Assembly: GCA_021613535.1 (NCBI GenBank)
Contig: CP075493.1
Location: 9,052,001 to 9,116,000, forward strand
DNA: 64,000 nucleotides
Direction of reading: 5' to 3'
Source: Adineta vaga
Taxonomy: Eukaryota > Animalia > Rotifera
A program made the position numbers and the translations under genes. The notes under the pieces were generated by a model, which had not been told where the DNA came from, did no database searches, and was given only the letters and a program-made list of their open reading frames with translations. Below are positions 8,515-52,157 of the stretch, in pieces (positions within the stretch are counted from its first letter, which is position 1; each line of letters starts with the position of its first letter).

Positions 8515-9810
8515 TCAACTGTCATCTTCTAATACATTGATTAGATTCATAGTTGCCAATTTCTTGGCTAATTCAATGGCAAAGTCTTTTCCTCGATTCA
8601 TATTCGCTTCGGAATTCGGTTCGATATGATCAGACCATCGAGTAGGAATCCATTGTGTACCATGCAATGCACCAATAATATCTCCAATCATAGCAGCGAT
8701 AGTATCAGTATCACCACCCATATTCACTCCACGAATAAGACATTCCTCTGGTTCTCGATAACTTTCACAGATGACCCATAGAACGCATGGTACTGCTTCA
8801 ATTGCTTTTATTTGAAATGTATTACCGAAGGCTCTCACCATATCGATATCTGTTCTATACAATAAGAAAACATAAATAAAATTTTATAATAACAATCAAT
8901 CTTAGAGTATGTAGCAAAGTTTTTTCTTTAATTTTGATTATGAGATGAGAGATGAATGAATGGATATTCGCTGCTATGACAAAGAGTATCTAGTTCGAAA
9001 ACGTCTCATAGTACTATAGGAAATACATACATCTTTGGCTTAGTACTTTTTATATCTGCTTGATGTTGTTGAGTATAGAAGTTGATTAAGTTTTTAATTT
9101 GATCTTTCATACTCTTCGTACGTGCTGTTTTTCGAAGAACACTAAGAAATTGATAGGGATCAAAAGTATCAATCGATGGACATCGAAGAGCTAAGATAAT
9201 GGCTTTGGCTAGAACAAATGCTCCGTCTATGCCTTCTGGATGAACATGAGAGGAAATAATAGCCATTCGAACAGCTTCATACAATTGTTCATTAGATGCA
9301 TGACGAAAAGCGAGAGCAATCGGAGCAATTCGCATTGCTCCACCATTTGCAAATGATCCATCTTTAAAAACAATACGACCACATTCACGGTAGTCTATTT
9401 TGCCTTCGAGCACACACTTCAAAAAGAAAGATTCTAATAAAACAATCAATACAGTTCAAAACAAAATATGTTACCCGCATACTTTCTTGAGCAGAATCCG
9501 GATAACCTCGTTTAATTCCAGTAGACCAAAATTCGGCATAGGATTTTGCAGCATGTTTTGGTTTCAAACCATTGTTTACAACTAGACTATAAGCTAACGC
9601 AAGCATTGCATTAGTATCATCCGTATACATATGAATACGAGAACCCATTTCTGGTATCCCCATATGAGGTGCTTCGATATCATCACGTACAATTCCATAT
9701 TCGTGTTTGATTCTTGACACTGTATACCCTTCAACACCAGCACCTAATTGATCACCAATCATGTGACAAAGTAATGAACCAATGCAACGATCTTCTATTT
9801 CAAAATCCAT
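8515..9810 (-). CDS. ADP-ribosylglycohydrolase (ARH3/DraG family)
   Basis: Motifs IGDQLGAGVEG, YTDDT, RGYP, GSFANGGAMRIAP and GGDTDTIAAMIG...GALHG lie in three ORF segments joined by introns. Confidence 0.92.
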
Positions 9811-10415
9811 CTTTACCTCTTTGCTCAGAAGTATTCATAGGAAATATACAACTCAGATAGTTTTTCATTTCTTAGGTTCGTAAACTTTAACTTTTGAAAA
9901 CATATGTAGACGGATGAACGACTCCTTTTATAAGATATAAATGAAATATTCGTCATATGGAATATAACCCATTTCATAAAAATGTAAATAGCATACGTAT
10001 AAAACTTACGCAATAAAAATAAAAACGAGTATAGGAATAGCAACATCAATCGGTAATAAAAAAGAAACGAAGACGAATCAGAGAGTAAAGGAAAAGAGGG
10101 TGTGACACTCATTTCATGACTGTACAAGGAACCGTTTGAATATCATTCACTATCAACATTCATCAGATGTATTCCTACTATTTGGACGTTATACATGAAA
10201 AATATATTTTATCGTTAAAATTAATTGGAATAGTATAAATAAACATCTTTCTACGACTTTTGACAGATATATTTCGTATGAACTTAGATTTTATTATGAG
10301 ATTAAATGCATATAAAACTAATATAATCGACTAAATGTCTTTCGAATGCATCAAATCATATTACTAATATTCTTTGTTCGAACCGGGCTTACAAAATAAT
10401 GTGAAAGAAAAAGAA

Positions 10416-11591
10416 TCAACTAATATTAATTTTTGATGGTTGTGCAATATAATATCCACAAAATAGTCTCCATGGTGCAAGATTTGCTGTTGATGGATTG
10501 ATAATTGAAGCCCCTCTATTGTCTTTGTTTGTTATGGCTCCAGCTAAACATTCAAATCAATGCAAATAAACGATTCTAACGTTATTGATCGACTTACCTC
10601 CTGGTTTATGAGACCAATAACCACTTGCATCCTATAAAAATGAAACGTTCAAAAATTATAAAACGTTGAAATCTTTTACAAAACAATAAATCTTACCTTT
10701 CGTACCCAATGATAATCAGCATTTGGCCATAGAAGTAGAGCAACAAAATGACCAATTTTAGGATGACCACGTGGTAATGTTGTTCCATAGTAAACAAGAC
10801 CATCTAGTACTGCAGCTTTTCGTACAGATTCACATGTAATTGCTGAGAATTTGTTTCCACTATGACGACCTGCAAAGAAAAAGAATCATTCATTTTATTT
10901 TTGTTCTAAGAAAATCAATTATACATCAATATGACCTGGTTGAGGAAATGTATTTGTAACAATATTTGTTCCTAAACAAAAAAATAATATTGATCAAAAT
11001 GAACTATCAACGATGATTACCATAGGCATAGCAATTATTTTTCGATTGTTTCTTTACAAAACATCCTCCATTTCCTGTCAATGGATTGTAGATTGGAACT
11101 TTATCTGAACCTTTAATTGGTACATGATCACAATTAATACGTGTTAAAACAACATATTTAGTCAAAACTATCGATCGTCCGAGATGTTCGCTAACATGAC
11201 GAATAATCGTTGGAGTAAGATACAATCGACCACTATTTAATAGTTGCTTTTCAAGAGATGTTAATCCATGAACAAATATTTGTTTTTCTGCAGAACAACT
11301 AATGGTAAAACCATGATATCCCATGATTCGTGTTGTGAAATTGACCGGTAATAATTGACGATGATCATACTCTTTGAGAATTTTTTTCACGACATTTTTT
11401 AAATTAACTATTTGTGTTGTATTTATCATCCAAACTGGATTTGGTTTTGCAGAAAAAACATGAAGAGTTACTGATGGATGTAAACAATCTAATGTCAATA
11501 GATCATTTAAATCTTCTTTCGATGATTGATCATCACTTGTCCATGAAAATGAGACGAAAAGGCTGAACAACAAACAATGAATGAATTTCAT
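10416..11591 (-). CDS. Secreted protein with a C-terminal putative papain-fold (Cys-His) domain, NNCYAY...YHW...WSHKPG family; 5 exons
   Basis: Signal peptide MKFIHCLLFSLFVSFSWTS. Spliced C-terminus NNCYAYGTNIVTNTFPQPGRHSG...AAVLDGL...HFVALLLWPNADYHWVRKDASGYWSHKPG...FCGYYIAQPSKINIS*. Confidence 0.75.
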
Positions 11592-13717: not shown

Positions 13718-15475
13718 TTATTCAATGGTATAATAATTTTCTTGTGTTTTGCATAGATTGGTTATTTTAAATATGTTATAAAGTCCCATATTTTGATTTG
13801 AACCATTAGCGAATACATAGCCACCACTCTGACGTGCTCTTCCAGCAGTAACATGATTATAATTATTATCATTGTAACAGACTTTTTGAATTTGTGTACT
13901 TGATGTAACTTCAGTAGATTTATCACTTTCTTGTCCACCTTTGACTGCCGATACTTGATATCTATATTCAGTACCAGCACTTAAACCACTATCTGTATAC
14001 GATGATACAGCAACATTTGCAATTTTATTTCCATTGCGATAAACATTATATTGTTCGGCAGTTGAACTAGCTGTCCATTGTAAACTAATTGAATTTGCTG
14101 TAGTTCCAGTGACTGACAATCCATTTGGTGTTTCAATGGCTGGTGCTTGACCTGTCGTTTTTCCAGTAACAGAATTTGATGCAGCACTTTCACTACCTTG
14201 AGTTGAAACAGCTTTGACAGTGAATGTATATGTTGAACCCGAATTTAAATTGGAATCAGTGTATGTAGTACTTGTAATAATTTGAGTGTTAGCTTTTGCT
14301 CCATTTCTGTAAACATTATAACCTGATGCATCCGTTACTTTTTGCCAAGAAAGAGTCACTGAATTGTCTTCAACTGCATCGACTTTAAGTTGAGTTGGTA
14401 CTTCAATTGGATTGAAACCACTGACAATTCGATCGATCATTTTCTTCATTGCTGTCGATTGTTTTCCACTTTTAACATTAAAATCAGTTCCATACCATCC
14501 AATCCAATCCCAACATCCATTCATATTTGGAAATGGTGCTCGAACTGTTACTGATCGTGTACTTGTTGATACTGCTTGCGGATATAAAATAATGAAATTA
14601 TTCGTATCAGCCCATCGATTATATCCAGTATTTTTCACATATTTATCACCAATTTTTTCATAGCCTTGTAAACATCCATGATATGCAATATGTAATCGAC
14701 AAACTTCACCATTAGCACAACTTTTCGGTACATAAACCCATGCAGTTATACTCATACCATTACTTCTGGCATTACTAATAAATTCTTGTTGATCAAATTC
14801 AATAAATTTTCCAGTTAATGCACCATTATTTCTTGGTTTTAAATTTCCATAAATATGTTCTAAGATAGCTCCGGCTCCATCAAATCCACAATTACTGATA
14901 TATGGACTACTTGCTGATGTGCATGGATTATTTCCGGTACCATCAAAGTCCGTTGGAAATGTATGTGCTGTTTTTAAATCTTTCTTAAACACGACATTTT
15001 CACTGGGTATAAATTGACCTTCTGTTACGTAATATTTATACAATTGATTCATTACTGATACACTTACAGTTGTATCTGATGTACCAGATATCATATAAAC
15101 TTTATGTTTAGCAAGATTTTTAATATCATCAATTTTATTTCCACTCCATGCTTTCGTATTTGAAATCGATTTTGCTACAGATGGAGTACCCGAATACATG
15201 CAACTTGTATAACTCATTTGTGCGGCACAATCATATGGACCACCGGCAACAATTCCTGCACCTTTGATTGAACTTGAAAATGCTACATGCAATTGTGTAG
15301 CAAAAAAAGCACCCGATGATAAACCAGAAATCGATGTTTCTGCAGGATCAACATTGTATGAAGCTAATTTCTATACGAAATGGGTATTATGTCAAATTCA
15401 ATTCGAATGAAACACTAGTCTTACTTCTGCTCCATAGCAACTACTTATGAATAAAAACATCCATAAGATCGACAT
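13718..15475 (-). CDS. phaZ: Extracellular-type poly(3-hydroxybutyrate) depolymerase: type-2 catalytic domain, two Fn3 domains, C-terminal PHB substrate-binding domain
   Basis: Exon 1 (15475-15425) encodes the signal peptide MSILWMFLFISSCYGAE, followed by a 54-nt GT-AG intron at 15371-15424. Catalytic motifs: lipase box SISGLSSG, AGGPYDCA, GTSDTTV (Asp), TAHTFPT (His), HGCLQ, NGCWDW. Two Fn3 repeats (W...GYNVYRNG...YTD). C-terminal NNYNHVTAGRA...GGYVFANGSNQNMGLYN. Confidence 0.93.
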
Positions 15476-16134: not shown

Positions 16135-17402
16135 ATGTCATCGATGACTGTAAGTAAATAGAAATTCTTATCGCATTCATAGTGATCTTTATCTATATAG
16201 ACTTGTGTATCTCCTGCTCCTGAGAATGATGTGATAATTTCTTCTTAATCGAAAAGTATCATCAACAAATGCAGTAAAAACTACTGCTGGTATAAAATCA
16301 CTTTTTACTAAGAAAATTTTTCAATATTATTTCATACAATTTAGATACAAAAAGTACATCAAAACAAGTTTCAGATGTAACAAGTATCACATCAACATTG
16401 TCCAGTTTTGGTGAGTATTAATATTTCAAAAGTCATATCATAAGTTATATATTTTCTCTTTTGTTTATAATAGAAAAGACTTTCCTTTGTAACTATCTTG
16501 TTATACTAGACAGTGATGCAGAACGATTTATTTCATATCAATCGTATTCAACTGGTAATACACCTTGGTCATTGAATAGTGCTGATTTAAATCATGATGA
16601 TAATCTTGATATTGCTGTTGTTAATCGACGAGCTGCATCGGTGAGCATTTATTTTGGTTTCGCTAATGGTACATTTCAAAATTCTATACAATATCCAATC
16701 AAAAATAATTCCGTATTTATTACTCTCAATGATCTTAATAATGATAATAAAACGGATTTAATTGTTGTTCAAGCTGATGATAATTCGCTTGGAATCTTAT
16801 ATGGGAATGGTGATGGAAGTTTTCTGAATCGTTTGAATTTTCCTGTTGGAAGATATCCTTATTGGATTGATATCAAAGATTTAAATGATGATCAACGATT
16901 AGATATGATCGTTGTTAATGATAATGCAAAATCTGTTTATATTTTACTTCAAGATGAACATTAAAATATTGCACGAAAAGGAATTTATTCTACAGGTAAT
17001 TCTGTAACTGCTGTAGAGATTAGTTATTTAAATAATGATACATATTATGATTTTGTTGTTACCGATTATGATGATAATACAATTAGTATTTTATTTAATA
17101 TTGATAATGGGCTATTTCAACGACATGTTCGATATGCAACAGGATTATATCCTATAACCGTTCGAGGAACTGATCTGAATAATGATACATTTCTTGATAT
17201 TATTGTTGCGAATTATGGTGATAATTATTTCATGATTTTTTATAATAATGGTAATGGAATATTTCGATCACCTGTAAAAATTTATACAAAATCATCTTCA
17301 ACATCGATTATTACAAATGATTTTAATCATGATGGCAATATGGATATTGCAGTTGTTAATCAAAAAGAAAATACTTTAAATGTTTTTTTAAATCAATGTT
17401 AA
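16135..17402 (+). pseudogene. FG-GAP/VCBS-repeat beta-propeller gene with one in-frame premature stop
   Basis: Repeats such as ADLNHDDNLDIAV, NDLNNDNKTDLIV and KDLNDDQRLDMIV. TAA at 16962-16964 is followed in the same frame by three more repeats up to ...FLNQC* (17400-17402). The short Ser/Thr-rich 5' exons and the start are tentative. Confidence 0.75.
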
Positions 17403-23623: not shown

Positions 23624-26600
23624 ATGAATTTAAATATCCGTCAATATTATTCATTGGTGTATCATCTTCGTTTTGTTTTTATCTTGATCATTATCGAACA
23701 AATAAAGATTATTGATGCAAATCAGATAAGTATGTTACAGAATTCGATTGAAAGATTGAATTAGGACGATCGAGAAATTTAGATTTGAAACAATCCTATT
23801 GTCGAGATCTTCGTGATTGTCAAACATATTTTCCCTGTGCAGTTTTTTCCAGTGGTTTTAGTTATTTATATGTTATTAAACGTTGTCAAAATGAACAAAT
23901 TTTTGATGAAACGAAACAGAAATGTGTTAAAAATACATTCCTTGATCCGACATGTTCAAAAAAGTTTCCCAATAGGAAATCACGTGTAACAACTAAACGT
24001 CCTTCGAAAATTGAACAGATCGAACATCTAACAAGTGCAGCACGAAAAAACATCAAGGTTTCACTTCGTTCATCATCGATCAATCAATTAAAAAGAAAAA
24101 ATATCGATATTGAACAAGTCGAAACAACTACTGAATCTTTAGTTCAATTATTTGATCATCAAATAAATGATAATAATCCGAAAATTCATCGAGTTTGTTA
24201 CATTACTAACTGGTCACAATATCGTCCAGGTGAAGCTAAATTTGAACTTGAATATATTGATCCGTTTATGTGCACACATATTATCTATGCGTATGCAACT
24301 GTCAATACAGATAAACCAGAAATTATTCCTATACAAAAAGAAGATATTGGTAGATGGATTTTTTGTTTTGTGGTAAACAACTTATTTATTCATTTGTATT
24401 TTAGAACATTATCGAGAACTTGCTCTTTTGAAAAAAACCAATCCAGATTTGAAAATTTCGATTCGATTAGGAGGAAAAAGTGGTCTTTATACTCGATATC
24501 TTAAACGATCAAAAAGTGCTTCACAACTTGTTCGAAGTCTTATTTGGTATTGTTTTGGTTTTCTTTCTTCTTATCAGGATGAATTCATTTGAAATATAAA
24601 TAGGTATATGCAATCATATGGATTCGATGGAGTTGATGTAGCTTTAGAATTTCCTGATGATGCTGTTCCAGAAGATAAAGTAGCATTGACAACTTTGTTA
24701 GAAGTTTGTTAAATTTTAAGAACAACTATAGAAAGAAGATTGAATGTTTGCTTTTTTTCTGCTGTAGGAAATTACAAAACAGAAACGATTAATGCCACAA
24801 ATGATTGTGACCTTAACTGTAGCACCATTTATTGATCATTTATCGAAAGTATATGATGTTCAAAAAATTGAAAAGTAATCTTCTTTTTCTAATCTTTTTA
24901 ATCACATATTATATCTTTATGTTTTTAATAGATTAGTAAACTATGTCAATTTAATGACATTTGATCTTTATGGTAAATAGAATAGATTGAATTTGTTATG
25001 ATGAAATTGACCTTTCCATTCTATAGGTCCATGGGACGAAAAAACAGGTGTGTCTGCACCATTGTATCATCAACCATATCAAGCCGAATCAGAATCAATT
25101 CGAAATGTGGTAAGACAAATGAATATATATTTACTGTTTCTTGTTTTTATTTGATCATGGATTTATTTGTAGGACGGATTGGTTAAATTGTGGTTAAGTC
25201 TTGGCGTACCACGTGAAAAAATCCTGATCGGTATACCAACTTTTGGTCGATCATTTACTTTAACTAGTTCACAAAAAGGTCTTCATGCACCAGGTACAAC
25301 TAATTTAGATTTATTGTTAATGAAAAAATACGATTGTCTATTTAGTCAATGGTCCAGGTTATCCTGGTCGATATACGAAAACGCGAGGTTTTCTTTCATA
25401 CTTTGAAGTAAGAAACCTTTCCTTTTCTTCTATATCTTTTCGAATATATGTACATAAAACTTCGTAGATATGTGAAAAACAAAGATTAAAAAGTTGGCAA
25501 AAAGTATGGTTAGATGCTGAGAAAGCTTGGTATATGACTAGTGGTGATCAATGGATTGGATACGAAGATGTAGATTCAGCCATATTGAAAGTAAGATGCG
25601 AATAAAGAATTTATAAACGGATTCAATATTTGTTCGAATTAGGCACAATATGCGAAAGGAGAACAATTAGCTGGTGTATTCATATGGAGTGTTGATAATG
25701 ATGGTACGTGAGGTATTAATAAAATAGTAATTGTAAGAAAGATTAGAAGAAAACAAACATATTAAACATAATATAAATGAGCAGGCTATGGAGAACATCA
25801 TATTCTGAGTAGAATCTATTCAGTAAAAAATTATTTATCTGATTATTAAAAGAATAGATGATGATGATGATGATGATAATGTAATTGAAATGAAATATTG
25901 ACTCCGATGAATAATTATTATTTTTTTACGTTTAGAATTCTCTGGTTTCTTCTGTAATACTGAACCATTTCCAATTACTCGTCAAGTGTTTGCTACACTG
26001 AATCTACCAGTACCAGTGACTAGTGCTCCAGCTATTGCTCTTCAATCACGTTTACCAGCTGCTACACCTATTCGTTTTGTTAATGTACAATCTCAACCAT
26101 CTTCTGCATCTGGAATGTTACCAATAAATATACAAAAATTATTAAATGCTCTCAATGTTCTATCAGGTACAACACGTTATGCACATCTCATTGAAACGAC
26201 GCCAGCACCACCGCCACCTCCAGTTGCACATCAAACCTACAATGCAGAATATATCTGTGGTCGTCATCGAATGAGTCGTAATGGAATTCATCGTGATCGT
26301 ACAAATTGTTCAATATTTTACTATTGTGAAGGTGATGATTTAAATTCTTTACGTTATCATATATTTTTTTGTCCACCTGGTCTGGAATTTTCCATGGATG
26401 GTTGTACTTGTGATTGGCCAACAGGTCATTCATGTCAATCAGGTGGTGATACGTTCTGTGTGTCACTTTCAGCTACAACAACGACGACAACAACAATTCC
26501 AACACCTTATATTCCGCAATCAGCAATCGATACATTAAGTAATCTTGGTCAATTATTAGATATATCAGATGGTCGAACATCAACTTTTGATTGTTCTGGT

Positions 26601-26807
26601 CGACGATCTGGTCTCTATCGTGATATGTATGATTGTACAAGATTCTATTTTTGTACAACAAATGATCAGATATCCGATGGAACATTACTTCGTTATGATT
26701 TCATTTGTCCAACAAATTATGTATTTAGTATGTTAACATGCCGTTGTGAAACTAGACAAAGTCACATGTGTCATACATTATCGAAAACTGATTGTGTACT
26801 TTTATGA
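23624..26807 (+). CDS. GH18 chitinase-like protein with a degenerate catalytic motif, one N-terminal and two C-terminal CBM14-like domains
   Basis: RVCYITNWSQYRPG, IDPFMCTHIIYAYA, FDGVDVALEFP, VNLMTFDLYGPW, GIPTFGRSFTL, WIGYED, GVFIWSVDND. Two six-Cys modules C...GIHRDRTNCSIFYYC...CPPGLEFS...C and C...GLYRDMYDCTRFYFC...CPTNYVFS...C. Confidence 0.92.
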
Positions 26808-48400: not shown

Positions 48401-51400
48401 AAACGAAGAAAAAAAAATTGCTTCTATATTCATGATTAATAATAAATTCTCTTGTTTTCCATAGGTAGTATTTAATTTATTTGGAACTACTTATGTTAAT
48501 TTATCATCAGTCAATTGTATTTGTGCCAAGAACTCTGCTTGTCAAACTCCTGTTGCTGTTTATCAAATGGATAGTATTTGGAATTCTCGTATACATGCCT
48601 ATATCAGTTATATAGTACCAGGTGCAATTAGAAGTTGTTCAACATATAGTTCATTGATGTTTTCACAATTACTATGTTTTTATTCAAATACAAGTTGTTT
48701 TTCTATTCTAATCAATTATATAAAAGATACTTATTATCAAAATGTTGAATTTTCCACCTGGTTTGATCCTAATCCACTTGTTTATGATCCAAAATCAAGT
48801 CGTTATCCTCCAGATACAACAGTTTCAACAATAGTAGAACAAATCATGATCGAACGATGGAATCCATCATATTCATATAAGGATTTCTATCAAATATGTG
48901 CACCAAAGTCTTGTACTTATTATCAAAGAGCTAATGCAAAATCTATTTTTGAAGTAATCATCACATTTATTTCTATGATTGGCGGTCTTACTCTTGCATT
49001 AAAATTAATTACACCACTATTTATCAAATTGATTGGTGGTCTATTGACAGTTATTGTTCGAAAACCACGACAAAAAATAGAACAAACAGGTAAAATCTTG
49101 ATTATTTTAATATCATAAGCAGTATTGTAGAAGGAATTTTTTTTTTCTAGTCACAATTCGTCGTAGCACATCTGATCAAATGAAGACAACTGTGAAAAAC
49201 GTTGTCGTATATGTTTATGATCAAGCAATTAATATGAACATATTCTCAATGCGAGATCTAGGAAGTAACATCGATCGAAATACTGCTAAACAACTTGGTA
49301 AATGGGCAACACGTCTTCATATTGCTTTATTTATTGTTGGTCTTGCTATTCTCACATTGCATACTAGTATTCAACCTCAAACTGTAACAAGAATTTTCAA
49401 TAAGCCATCGTTCAATTCATATAATAAGCTCAGAAAAGAATATGGAGATCAATTGAAATGTTCATGTTCAGTTATTGCATCGAAATACAACCAATTTGTT
49501 CAAATTGAACCCATATATCATCAAGTGAGACACAAATAGTCGGAAAGAAAACGAAATGTTCCATTTCTAATATATTTCATTACAGATTTGTAAAAGTCAG
49601 TTCACATCTGATCAATGGCGAAATGATGTTACAAGTGGTTTGACTAGTAATCTTTCGATGTATGAACAAAGAGATTATCGTCGTTTTCTTTCTGCTCATT
49701 TACAATATCTTCAAGGTTTATGTCAACTTTCAATTCGATCTATCGACAATGCAATTGAACAATTTCTTACGTCATTATTTATTACAAATGAACTTTTATC
49801 AAATGATACTTTTCATGCACGTCTTAGTTTCTTAATTGAACAAGAGAAATCAAATGCTCCGAATACATTCATTCGTCTGTTCTTTTTAATGCGAAGTATT
49901 AATCAAGGAAATGCATATGTAACAACATATGGAACAAATTTTGAATATGTTTCTCCATGGTTTGCTGACACAACATACTATCCTGTTTTTTTGAGTAGAG
50001 CAATCATCTATGATAATAATTGTTCTTGTGGAATACATTCAAATTGTACCGTTCCAGCAAATATTATTGGAGTAAACGGTACTGTTATAAGTTCAGTCAA
50101 AGGTTTGAAAATGGGTTGTACACCAAGTGAATCTTTGCATTCGTCCACTCTCGAATGTTTTTATAATCAATCTTGTATTAACTTACTTAAACTATCTACT
50201 GATTCAATACTTCAAATGAATTCTTCGACTCCTCTCTCAATAACGATGAGTCGATTCTTGATGAATACAACCGTGACTGAACTTATGAATGAACTGTTTG
50301 TTGAACAATGGGTACCATCAATCAATTATACGTCTTATTTTGAACACTGTTTACCTCTATTATGTTCGTATATTTACGATGAACCATTTAATATACTTTA
50401 TTTAGTCACTGTTATCATTGGTCTTCAAGGTGGTCTCACAATTGTTCTTGCCTGGATTTGTCCTAAATTCATTCGAATTCTAGCAAATTTAAATAAGTAT
50501 CGAAAGAAACGATTAAATGTAATCCAAGCTGAATCATCTGTTCAAACGACAACTACGGACATTGATACCATACATACTACTTCATGTATTATGCTCAATC
50601 AATGCCACGACATGTTCCGTCTGAGTATAATTTCATTTTTTGTTTTCTTTTTTAAATTGTGTATCGTTGTTGCATTTAGAAAAAGAGTTGAATCACTAAA
50701 TCGAAGACGTATGAAAATCATTTTGTCATGTTTAGTAGTGTTGATTTTAATAATCGCTCTCATCTTATTCTCGTTTTACATCAATCGAGTAAGAAAGCAA
50801 GATACGATTTCAACAAGTAAAATATAATTGGAACTTGTTTCATGTATATAAATCAATTTTTTTCCTTTTTTAGCAACTGCATCAACAATGTCGACTAGTC
50901 TTGTAACAAGCAAAATGACGACAAGTACAACAACAACAACAACAATGACAACTTCAACTACCCACAGTAAATATTTGATCGTTGTTTTTTTCTAATAATT
51001 TTCTTCTATATTTTCATTCAGTGCCCATTTGTCAATTACAATTTCAAGCAACAATCAGATATAAAACTGGTTCTACTGCTGGTCTCAAATCACCTGTCGT
51101 TGCTGATTTCAATGGTGATAATCTACTTGACATCGCTTTTTTCAATTATGGTACTAGTAGTATCCATGTACTGATTGGAGATGGAAGAGGAAATTATACA
51201 GCAGAATTTAGGACTATAGTACAAAAATTTACTACTTGGTATTTTAGCATGGCAGTTGCCGATTTTAATAACGATAGACTAAGCGATATTGTATTGACCA
51301 GTGAGAATAAAGCTTTTGTGTATATAATATTGGGAAATGGTAATGGGACGTTTCGATCATTTACAACATATTTTATGGGAGATACTGTTAATTTAAGAGG

Positions 51401-52157
51401 AATTGTCGCGTATGATTTTAATGGTGACAATAATACAGATATTGCTGTTTCTGCTCCCGGATATAATCTTATTATTATCTTGTTAGGAAATGGTGATGGA
51501 ACATTCTCAAATAAGACAACATATTTCGCTGGACGTAATGCAAATCCATCATCAGTCGATATGGCTGACTTCAATGGTGATGGTCATCAAGATATTTGCT
51601 ATAATAATATTGTGACACGAGGTGTGGGTGTTTTACTTGGAAGAGGTGATGGAACCTTTGAAGATCAGAAAGCATCTTTTGTTGGTGGTTTTTATCAACC
51701 ATCTTATATTGCTGTTGGTGATTTCAATGCTGATCAACGACCAGATGTTGCAGTTTCTTATAGTGGTGGGAAAAGTCTTGGTGTTCTTTTAGGTTATGGA
51801 AATGGAACATTGACTTCAGTAGAAAAATTTCCTGTTGGTAATAAAACATTTTATATACGAATTAGTGCTGGTGATTTTAATAATGATGGTATTTGGGACA
51901 TTGTTGCTAATCCTACTGCAAGATCCGTTATATATGTTTTAGTTGGATATGGTGATGGAAATTTTGATACACAAATGATTTTTTCTGCAAACATGACAGG
52001 TGGTTACACATGGGTTGTTCCTGCTGATTTTAATAATGACGGTTGTCAAGATATACTCGCTACGGATGATCAGGCTGGTGCGGTATTTGTTCTAATGAAT
52101 TCGTGTGCATGTCAAACAACTCCAATTATCAGAAAGAATACAACCATGAGACCTTAA
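45487..52157 (+). CDS. Large multi-pass membrane protein: three tandem TM/Cys-rich loop/TM repeats, a seventh TM, a Thr-rich stalk and an FG-GAP/VCBS propeller; one apparent +1 frameshift
   Basis: Three homologous units, each NLF...TR.Y..L(TM)...LxCxCS...HxICxSxF...W...DxR...QxLxxLC...W....Y..Y...CxPxxCxY...GGL(TM). The last exon (51022-52157) has seven DFNGD/DFNND-type repeats. Frameshift at ~46417-46440. Confidence 0.8.

Follow-up and report, generated by a model that had tools for sequence, protein, structure and literature searches.

A modular PHB depolymerase gene of probable bacterial origin in the bdelloid rotifer Adineta vaga

Introduction

[quoted passage not shown] In enzymes of this family a binding domain adsorbs the protein to the insoluble polyester and a catalytic triad cuts the ester bonds (PMC5445757, PMC11893044, PMC12278694). 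Animal homologues have been reported, as a first reading of the locus made from its sequence alone (hereafter the sequence-only reading) had already pointed out: the main text of Zeidler 2026 describes PHA depolymerases from Olavius, Amphimedon, Lumbricus, Folsomia and other animals and treats them as inherited, while homologues from two bdelloid species that group with fungi and bacteria are left there as ‘HGT or contamination’ (PMC13642032). The same text reports activity on PHB for related enzymes of animals and for the fungal one (PMC13642032). Our literature search found no further paper joining rotifers and depolymerases.

Horizontal gene transfer is routine in the A. vaga genome, with about 8.3% of genes being HGT candidates that are enriched near telomeres (PMC8494291). 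The locus studied here lies in a stretch of 64,000 nucleotides, which is called the window below. We consider it probable that a bdelloid ancestor acquired a whole bacterial PHB depolymerase gene, which was then domesticated and kept for PHB digestion; this is the full explanation that best fits the observations.

The gene and its product

The depolymerase gene is encoded on the minus strand in two exons and yields a product of 567 aa (Table 1). Five further GT-AG pairs in the gene would also preserve the reading frame; the 54-nt intron was chosen over them because it alone matches the junction of the orthologous genes and of a set of intronless contigs, which bears out the single spliceosomal intron that the sequence-only reading had placed after the leader. 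The leader is hydrophobic, 16-17 aa long and kept in the orthologues, and was judged by eye to be a signal peptide. Database searches, folds and trees took exon 2 or its parts as the query, and the joined 567-aa model was used in local comparisons only, including tblastn against four loci.

Exon 2 passes the NCBIfam model NF050059 for extracellular type-2 scl-PHA depolymerases with 369.6 bits (cut-off 280), and in the same profile search stays below threshold on the type-1 depolymerase model (87 against a cut-off of 150). It matches the Penicillium funiculosum PhaZ (PDB 2D80) with an E value of 1.2e-99, and in the alignment S35, D116, H153 and C250 fall on S39, D121, H155 and C250, the published triad and oxyanion cysteine of that enzyme. 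The Ser-Asp-His triad has its GxSxG box near the N-terminus with a hydrophobic residue at x1, the box being GLSSG, and the AlphaFold model of the catalytic domain superposes on 2D81 with a TM score of 0.91 by target. Judged by its sequence, the A. vaga gene is by family that of a type-2 PHA depolymerase, putatively secreted. All the motifs picked out by the sequence-only reading (GLSSG, GTSDTTV, TAHTFP, HGC, CWDW and NYNHVTAGRA...ANGSNQNMGL) are present, and the two Fn3 domains and C-terminal module that it described correspond to two PF00041 domains and a PhaZ-type module.

The C-terminal module has 163 relatives at E<=0.001, and most of the long ones are PHA depolymerases: the catalytic domain occurs in 31 of the 39 newly found relatives of at least 300 aa, and some proteins without this catalytic domain bear the module as well. 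It is 49-67% identical to the C-termini of bacterial PhaZ proteins and is present as a single copy in the A. vaga genome. No Pfam or PDB entry covers it. Its model (pLDDT 97) is small and mostly beta, and fold searches with that model returned nothing above Z 2.7, which at 55 residues is no proof of a new fold. Presumably the module resembles the SBD of Ralstonia pickettii T1, and it may belong to type 1 (SBD1), the type named by the sequence-only reading. Elsewhere (P0275, P0277 and P0227), an animal-type depolymerase is fused to a CBM14 chitin-binding domain and one from Aspergillus to CBM1; eukaryotic enzymes have thus gained other binding modules independently.

Table 1. Features of the modular depolymerase gene (positions in the window) and related loci outside it
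Feature	Position	Strand	Basis or remark
Exon 1: start codon and signal-peptide-like leader, aa 1-17	15425..15475	-	Same leader and junction in orthologues and intronless contigs L017, L018, L033
Intron: 54-nt GT-AG spliceosomal, phase 0, after aa 17	15371..15424	-	Same codon in orthologues
Exon 2	13718-15370	-	One long exon
Type-2 scl-PHA depolymerase catalytic domain, aa 18-336	14414..15370	-	NF050059, PDB 2D80, model fold
Lipase box GLSSG with nucleophile Ser35	15311..15325	-	Aligns with S39 of 2D80; the 2D81 S39A mutant differs here
Catalytic Asp116	15074..15076	-	Aligns with D121 of 2D80; invariant in alignment A1
Catalytic His153	14963..14965	-	Aligns with H155 of 2D80; invariant in alignment A1
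HGC oxyanion motif, Cys250	14672..14680	-	Follows the triad in the sequence, the type-2 arrangement; aligns with 2D80 Cys250
First fibronectin type III linker domain	14150..14404	-	PF00041; beta-sandwich in model
Second fibronectin type III linker domain	13895..14137	-	PF00041, two stretches
C-terminal PhaZ substrate-binding-type domain, 55 aa, NYxHVxAGRA...GSxQxMGL	13721..13885	-	163 relatives
Stop codon	13718..13720	-	
Catalytic-only paralogues L020-L023	C1:1.46 Mb, C2:4.06 Mb, C5:3.67 Mb, C5:4.92 Mb		60-70 aa insertion
Mite and mite-like catalytic-only loci	L030:8001-9401 (Blomia tropicalis), L028:6400-9116 (two tandem copies), L031, L032		

Genomic setting

A bacterial-like protein in an animal assembly raises the question of contamination, or of a chimeric join with bacterial DNA. 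The six contigs of the A. vaga assembly add up to 100.8 Mb, and the window occupies 9.05-9.12 Mb of the 18.1-Mb contig 1, in the middle of chromosome 1. The genes adjoining the depolymerase (a 7TM receptor, WD40, GH18/CBM14 and DUF3591) are animal genes. The GC3 of the gene is 0.157, compared with 0.13-0.22 in eight neighbouring ORFs and 0.82 in the Chitinimonas gene, so that host-like AT-rich codons amid animal genes, as first described from the sequence, are indeed what is found. A scan of the contigs of 185,579 prokaryote genomes returned an Fn3 fragment only and no near-identical gene, and so pointed to no named donor. Although the bacterial likeness of the protein is what contamination would predict, the location at 9.07 Mb of an 18.1-Mb chromosome, the intron and host GC3, the orthologues amid animal genes in independent assemblies, the linked neighbour kept in a further rotifer-like contig (L025) and the lack of a near-identical gene in the prokaryote scan all speak against it. 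In practice contamination or chimerism is refuted by the mid-chromosome site, the intron, the host GC3 and the independent orthologues, and we give it next to no credence.

Several other genes in the window were recorded in passing. The gene at 10407-11591 (-), which is linked to the depolymerase in L025 too, has several exons and encodes a protein that looks secreted and bears the motifs NNCYAY, GHF and DYHW; the protein has no Pfam match, we take it to resemble a papain-like family of unknown function, and it is possibly another foreign gene. The genes at 16461-16964 (+) and 50982-52157 (+) encode FG-GAP/VCBS-like repeat proteins, whose family is expanded in bdelloids. At 9006-9810 (-) there is an ADP-ribosylglycohydrolase gene split by an intron, and at 23785-26807 (+) one for a GH18 chitinase with CBM14 domains.

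Origin of the modular gene

All three domain types of the enzyme match bacterial proteins in the same order. Our trees were built from the catalytic domain only, over 319 columns, with many environmental sequences included. They set the gene against bacterial, fungal and animal depolymerases, a comparison of the kind that the sequence-only reading had proposed as a check. The modular genes of rotifers come out among bacterial sequences, as a clade of their own (99/89). Their closest bacterial relative is the protein P0043, which likewise has the layout with two Fn3 domains and is encoded on a contig of 64% GC; beyond it lie Chitinimonas (54-56% identity, full length) and a group with a protein from a Polyangia MAG. 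Proteins of Variovorax, Paracidovorax, Caldimonas and Aquabacterium form a separate clade (100/100). The full bacterial layout claimed by the sequence-only reading stands, but the Comamonas/Delftia-type enzymes that it named give way, as nearest relatives, to P0043 and the lineages next to it. Its view that the novelty lies mainly in the retained pair of Fn3 domains with the binding domain needs correction as well: double Fn3 is common in the nearest bacteria, which means that it was inherited rather than invented, and the amoeba Luapelamoeba hula shares the layout. In two of the close bacterial relatives a 3HB-oligomer hydrolase gene adjoins the depolymerase. An AU test rejects the grouping of the rotifer modular genes with Aspergillus, representing fungi (p=1.3e-4).

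The A. vaga genome also carries four catalytic-only, multi-intron paralogues that are 33-43% identical to the modular enzyme, I4U23_007048 being one of them, and a weak match to a fifth lies at C3:13.488 Mb. Two of the four were placed in the tree, where they join Branchiostoma, Daphnia, Halocaridina and Pseudolycoriella (100/94), and their introns are at positions other than that of the modular gene. Inherited depolymerases have been reported from animals (PMC13642032), and the modular gene might in principle descend vertically from an ancestral animal depolymerase and have gained its Fn3 and binding domains later. However, the modular gene fails to group with the inherited metazoan PHAD clade, a topology that the AU test rejects at p=1.5e-7 under the model used; its identity to the animal’s own paralogues is low, the intron positions differ, and the match to bacterial proteins extends over every domain in order. 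Vertical descent is in our estimation extremely improbable.

Two sets of sequences with a bearing on the wider distribution of the layout were also seen. P0162, from a 1587-bp Logan contig, is sister to the rotifer clade on a long branch; it has the catalytic domain and the binding domain and no Fn3. Five possibly eukaryotic proteins (P0509, P0491, P0468, P0478 and P0504) have the layout of catalytic, Fn3 and binding domains, and modular depolymerases may be widespread in protists.

Age and selection

The gene has full-length orthologues (70-77% identity) in two further species of Adineta, A. steineri and A. ricciae, and in five taxa of Rotaria, namely R. socialis, R. magnacalcarata, R. sordida, Rotaria sp. 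Silwood1 and Rotaria sp. Silwood2. The intron lies at the same codon and in phase 0 in A. steineri (48 nt), Rotaria sp. Silwood2 (48 nt) and R. socialis (171 nt), as well as in the metagenomic rotifer-like contigs L025 and L034, and its position is identical in every genomic copy checked. Three short contigs without the intron (L017, L018, L033) run through the junction as spliced transcripts would; they are full-length, have low GC3 and come from other bdelloid-like sources, one being 92% identical to A. vaga in the catalytic domain. The downstream neighbour seen in the window is also linked to the depolymerase in L025, which branches early, and has the same orientation there. We had considered whether the 21-kb contigs carrying P0037 were virus or plasmid, and this was ruled out because L025 is rotifer-like animal DNA with the intron. 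The loci of A. steineri, R. socialis and Rotaria sp. Silwood2 showed no synteny with the window, the tblastx rows there being sum-statistics noise.

The transfer is ancient and common to Adinetidae and Philodinidae, whose split one estimate puts at more than 60 Mya (PMC4632278). The sequence-only reading was thus correct in calling the gene domesticated and horizontally acquired, though the acquisition is not peculiar to this genome but old and shared by two families. There is no homoeologous second copy in the A. vaga genome, so the acquisition cannot be dated before tetraploidisation. Against three orthologues, dN/dS by simple counting over these short domains is about 0.08-0.15 for the catalytic domain, 0.11-0.23 for the binding domain and 0.25-0.75 for Fn3. 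The catalytic and binding domains are under purifying selection, and the pattern fits a protein whose two ends are functional while its middle part serves as a spacer. Four proteins of Rotaria Silwood1 and Silwood2 (P0039, P0036, P0041, P0046) represent a second copy whose binding domain is decayed or truncated, possibly in parallel with the loss of that domain in mites.

A mite lineage and the shared intron

The small clade that holds the rotifer genes (100/98) includes a catalytic-only group (98/99) made up of proteins from the mite Blomia tropicalis, one filed under the fly Rhagoletis zephyria, and environmental eukaryote sequences. The fly assembly presumably contains mite DNA. The Blomia copies are found in two accessions, on contigs of 1.0 and 15.5 Mb, adjoining a cuticle-protein gene. 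Members of the group exceed the NF050059 cut-off, and the Blomia copy and four environmental ones have a phase-0 intron or acceptor at the exact rotifer codon.

This shared intron raises the question whether rotifers acquired the gene directly from a bacterium, or via a different eukaryote (an animal or a protist) in which the intron was already present and which was a source common to rotifers and mites. Besides the intron, the position of rotifer and mite genes in one small clade, whose monophyly is not rejected (AU p=0.34), and the occurrence of modular enzymes in protists favour such a route. However, that clade includes the bacterial P0043, which groups with the mites in 675 of 1000 bootstrap trees, against 325 of 1000 for rotifers with mites. 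Moreover, the site is the boundary between leader and mature protein, where independent intron gains are likely to fall, and an independent gain is therefore plausible; as a rough guess, an exact match would arise by chance in about 5-10% of cases. A eukaryotic intermediate, which would be compatible with a function in PHB digestion, appears to us a possible though minority explanation, the alternative for the mite genes being a parallel transfer. More speculatively, there may have been a single entry into animals, after which the leader intron was gained, the gene moved between bdelloids and acariform mites, two distant phyla of bacterivores or detritivores, and the mites lost the Fn3 and binding domains; no other animal enzyme known would then be made, like the rotifer form, for eroding crystalline PHB; we think this fuller sequence of events rather unlikely.

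Proposed function

Taking the sequence, family, origin, age and selection of the modular gene as observed above, we infer its activity, its site of secretion and its division of labour with the paralogues. We propose that a bacterial gene encoding a type-2 catalytic domain, two Fn3 domains and a binding domain entered the line leading to both Adinetidae and Philodinidae, acquired an intron behind its leader, drifted to the host base composition and was kept by purifying selection. The enzyme would be secreted, as its leader indicates, most likely into the gut. There the C-terminal domain may adsorb to insoluble PHB with the two Fn3 domains acting as a spacer arm, and Ser35-His153-Asp116, with an oxyanion hole formed by Ser36 and Cys250, would hydrolyse the ester backbone. 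By analogy with the Penicillium and Ralstonia enzymes, the products should be 3-hydroxybutyrate monomers and short oligomers.

PHB turns partly crystalline once outside the cell. On our proposal, PHB freed from crushed prey would anchor the enzyme, and the released 3HB would be taken into ketone-body metabolism. A CoA-transferase gene is present in A. vaga; nothing in the genome scored above the PHB_DH cut-off for a 3HB dehydrogenase. A 3HB-oligomer hydrolase was not found in the A. vaga genome either, a weak negative given that no positive control accompanied the searches, and the oligomers may accordingly be finished by general esterases or by the catalytic-only paralogues. Because four inherited-type depolymerases are already present, the modular gene would add to the capacity for PHB rather than create it, probably extending the four catalytic-only enzymes to the denatured, partly crystalline polymer of crushed or dried bacteria. 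The A. vaga enzyme may digest prey granules or crystalline PHB, as the sequence-only reading had proposed.

The same paralogues can be read in another way. If they already cover PHB, the acquired gene might have been domesticated and repurposed, acting on another insoluble polyester or a surface ester, or in a role outside the gut such as biofilm, egg coat or defence. Binding domains do adsorb to polymers that their enzyme does not cut (PMC11893044), and bdelloids are reported to redeploy foreign genes in defence (PMC11258130). We judge such repurposing improbable, and prefer PHB digestion as the reason for which the gene was kept.

Significance

The enzyme family, animal depolymerases and HGT in bdelloids were already known; to these are added the presence in a single animal of depolymerases of two origins, and a lineage in mites that shares the intron. 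The two bdelloid outliers of Zeidler 2026 likely belong to the modular family described here. That microbe-like sequences in bdelloids are genuine host genes, old and under selection, answers a point left open in the main text of that study (PMC13642032), and mites have a further microbial-type lineage absent from its main text. Animals would have reached PHB digestion by at least two routes, and one animal keeps both kinds of enzyme. A single genome therefore offers a direct test of the value of the binding domain, with modular and catalytic-only enzymes compared on amorphous and crystalline PHB. Bdelloids are common in soil, moss and activated sludge, and the enzyme is relevant to what becomes of PHA bioplastics and of the carbon stored by microbes in these places.

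Comparison with known systems

The animal PHADs of Zeidler 2026 resemble the rotifer enzyme in being type-2 depolymerases of bacterivorous animals with the same proposed nutritional role, and they are secreted, as the rotifer enzyme would be; they differ in that the comparison made there was with the single-domain fungal enzyme, the main text being without fibronectin, linker or mites (PMC13642032). That fungal enzyme, the PhaZ of Penicillium (Talaromyces) funiculosum (2D80/2D81), shares about 50% identity over the structure-aligned catalytic domain, all catalytic residues and a TM score of 0.9, but consists of a single domain, and fungal sequences lie on a separate branch. The protein of Luapelamoeba hula (EukProt EP01087 P016292; P0121) has the catalytic domain, two Fn3 domains and binding domain of the rotifer layout, yet branches outside the rotifer-gene clade and is known from a transcriptome alone, where it may be contamination.

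The closest counterparts are the bacterial extracellular dPHA-scl type-2 enzymes with Fn3 (Comamonas/Delftia acidovorans, Leptothrix, Caldimonas; NF050059), with which the leader, N-terminal lipase box, C-terminal oxyanion motif, linker, binding domain and their order are shared. Unlike these, the rotifer gene stands on an animal chromosome, has an intron and AT-rich codons, and has no neighbouring oligomer hydrolase. It has two Fn3 domains, as have Chitinimonas, Oxalobacteraceae and P0043, and belongs to a sublineage apart from the Variovorax/Caldimonas clade.
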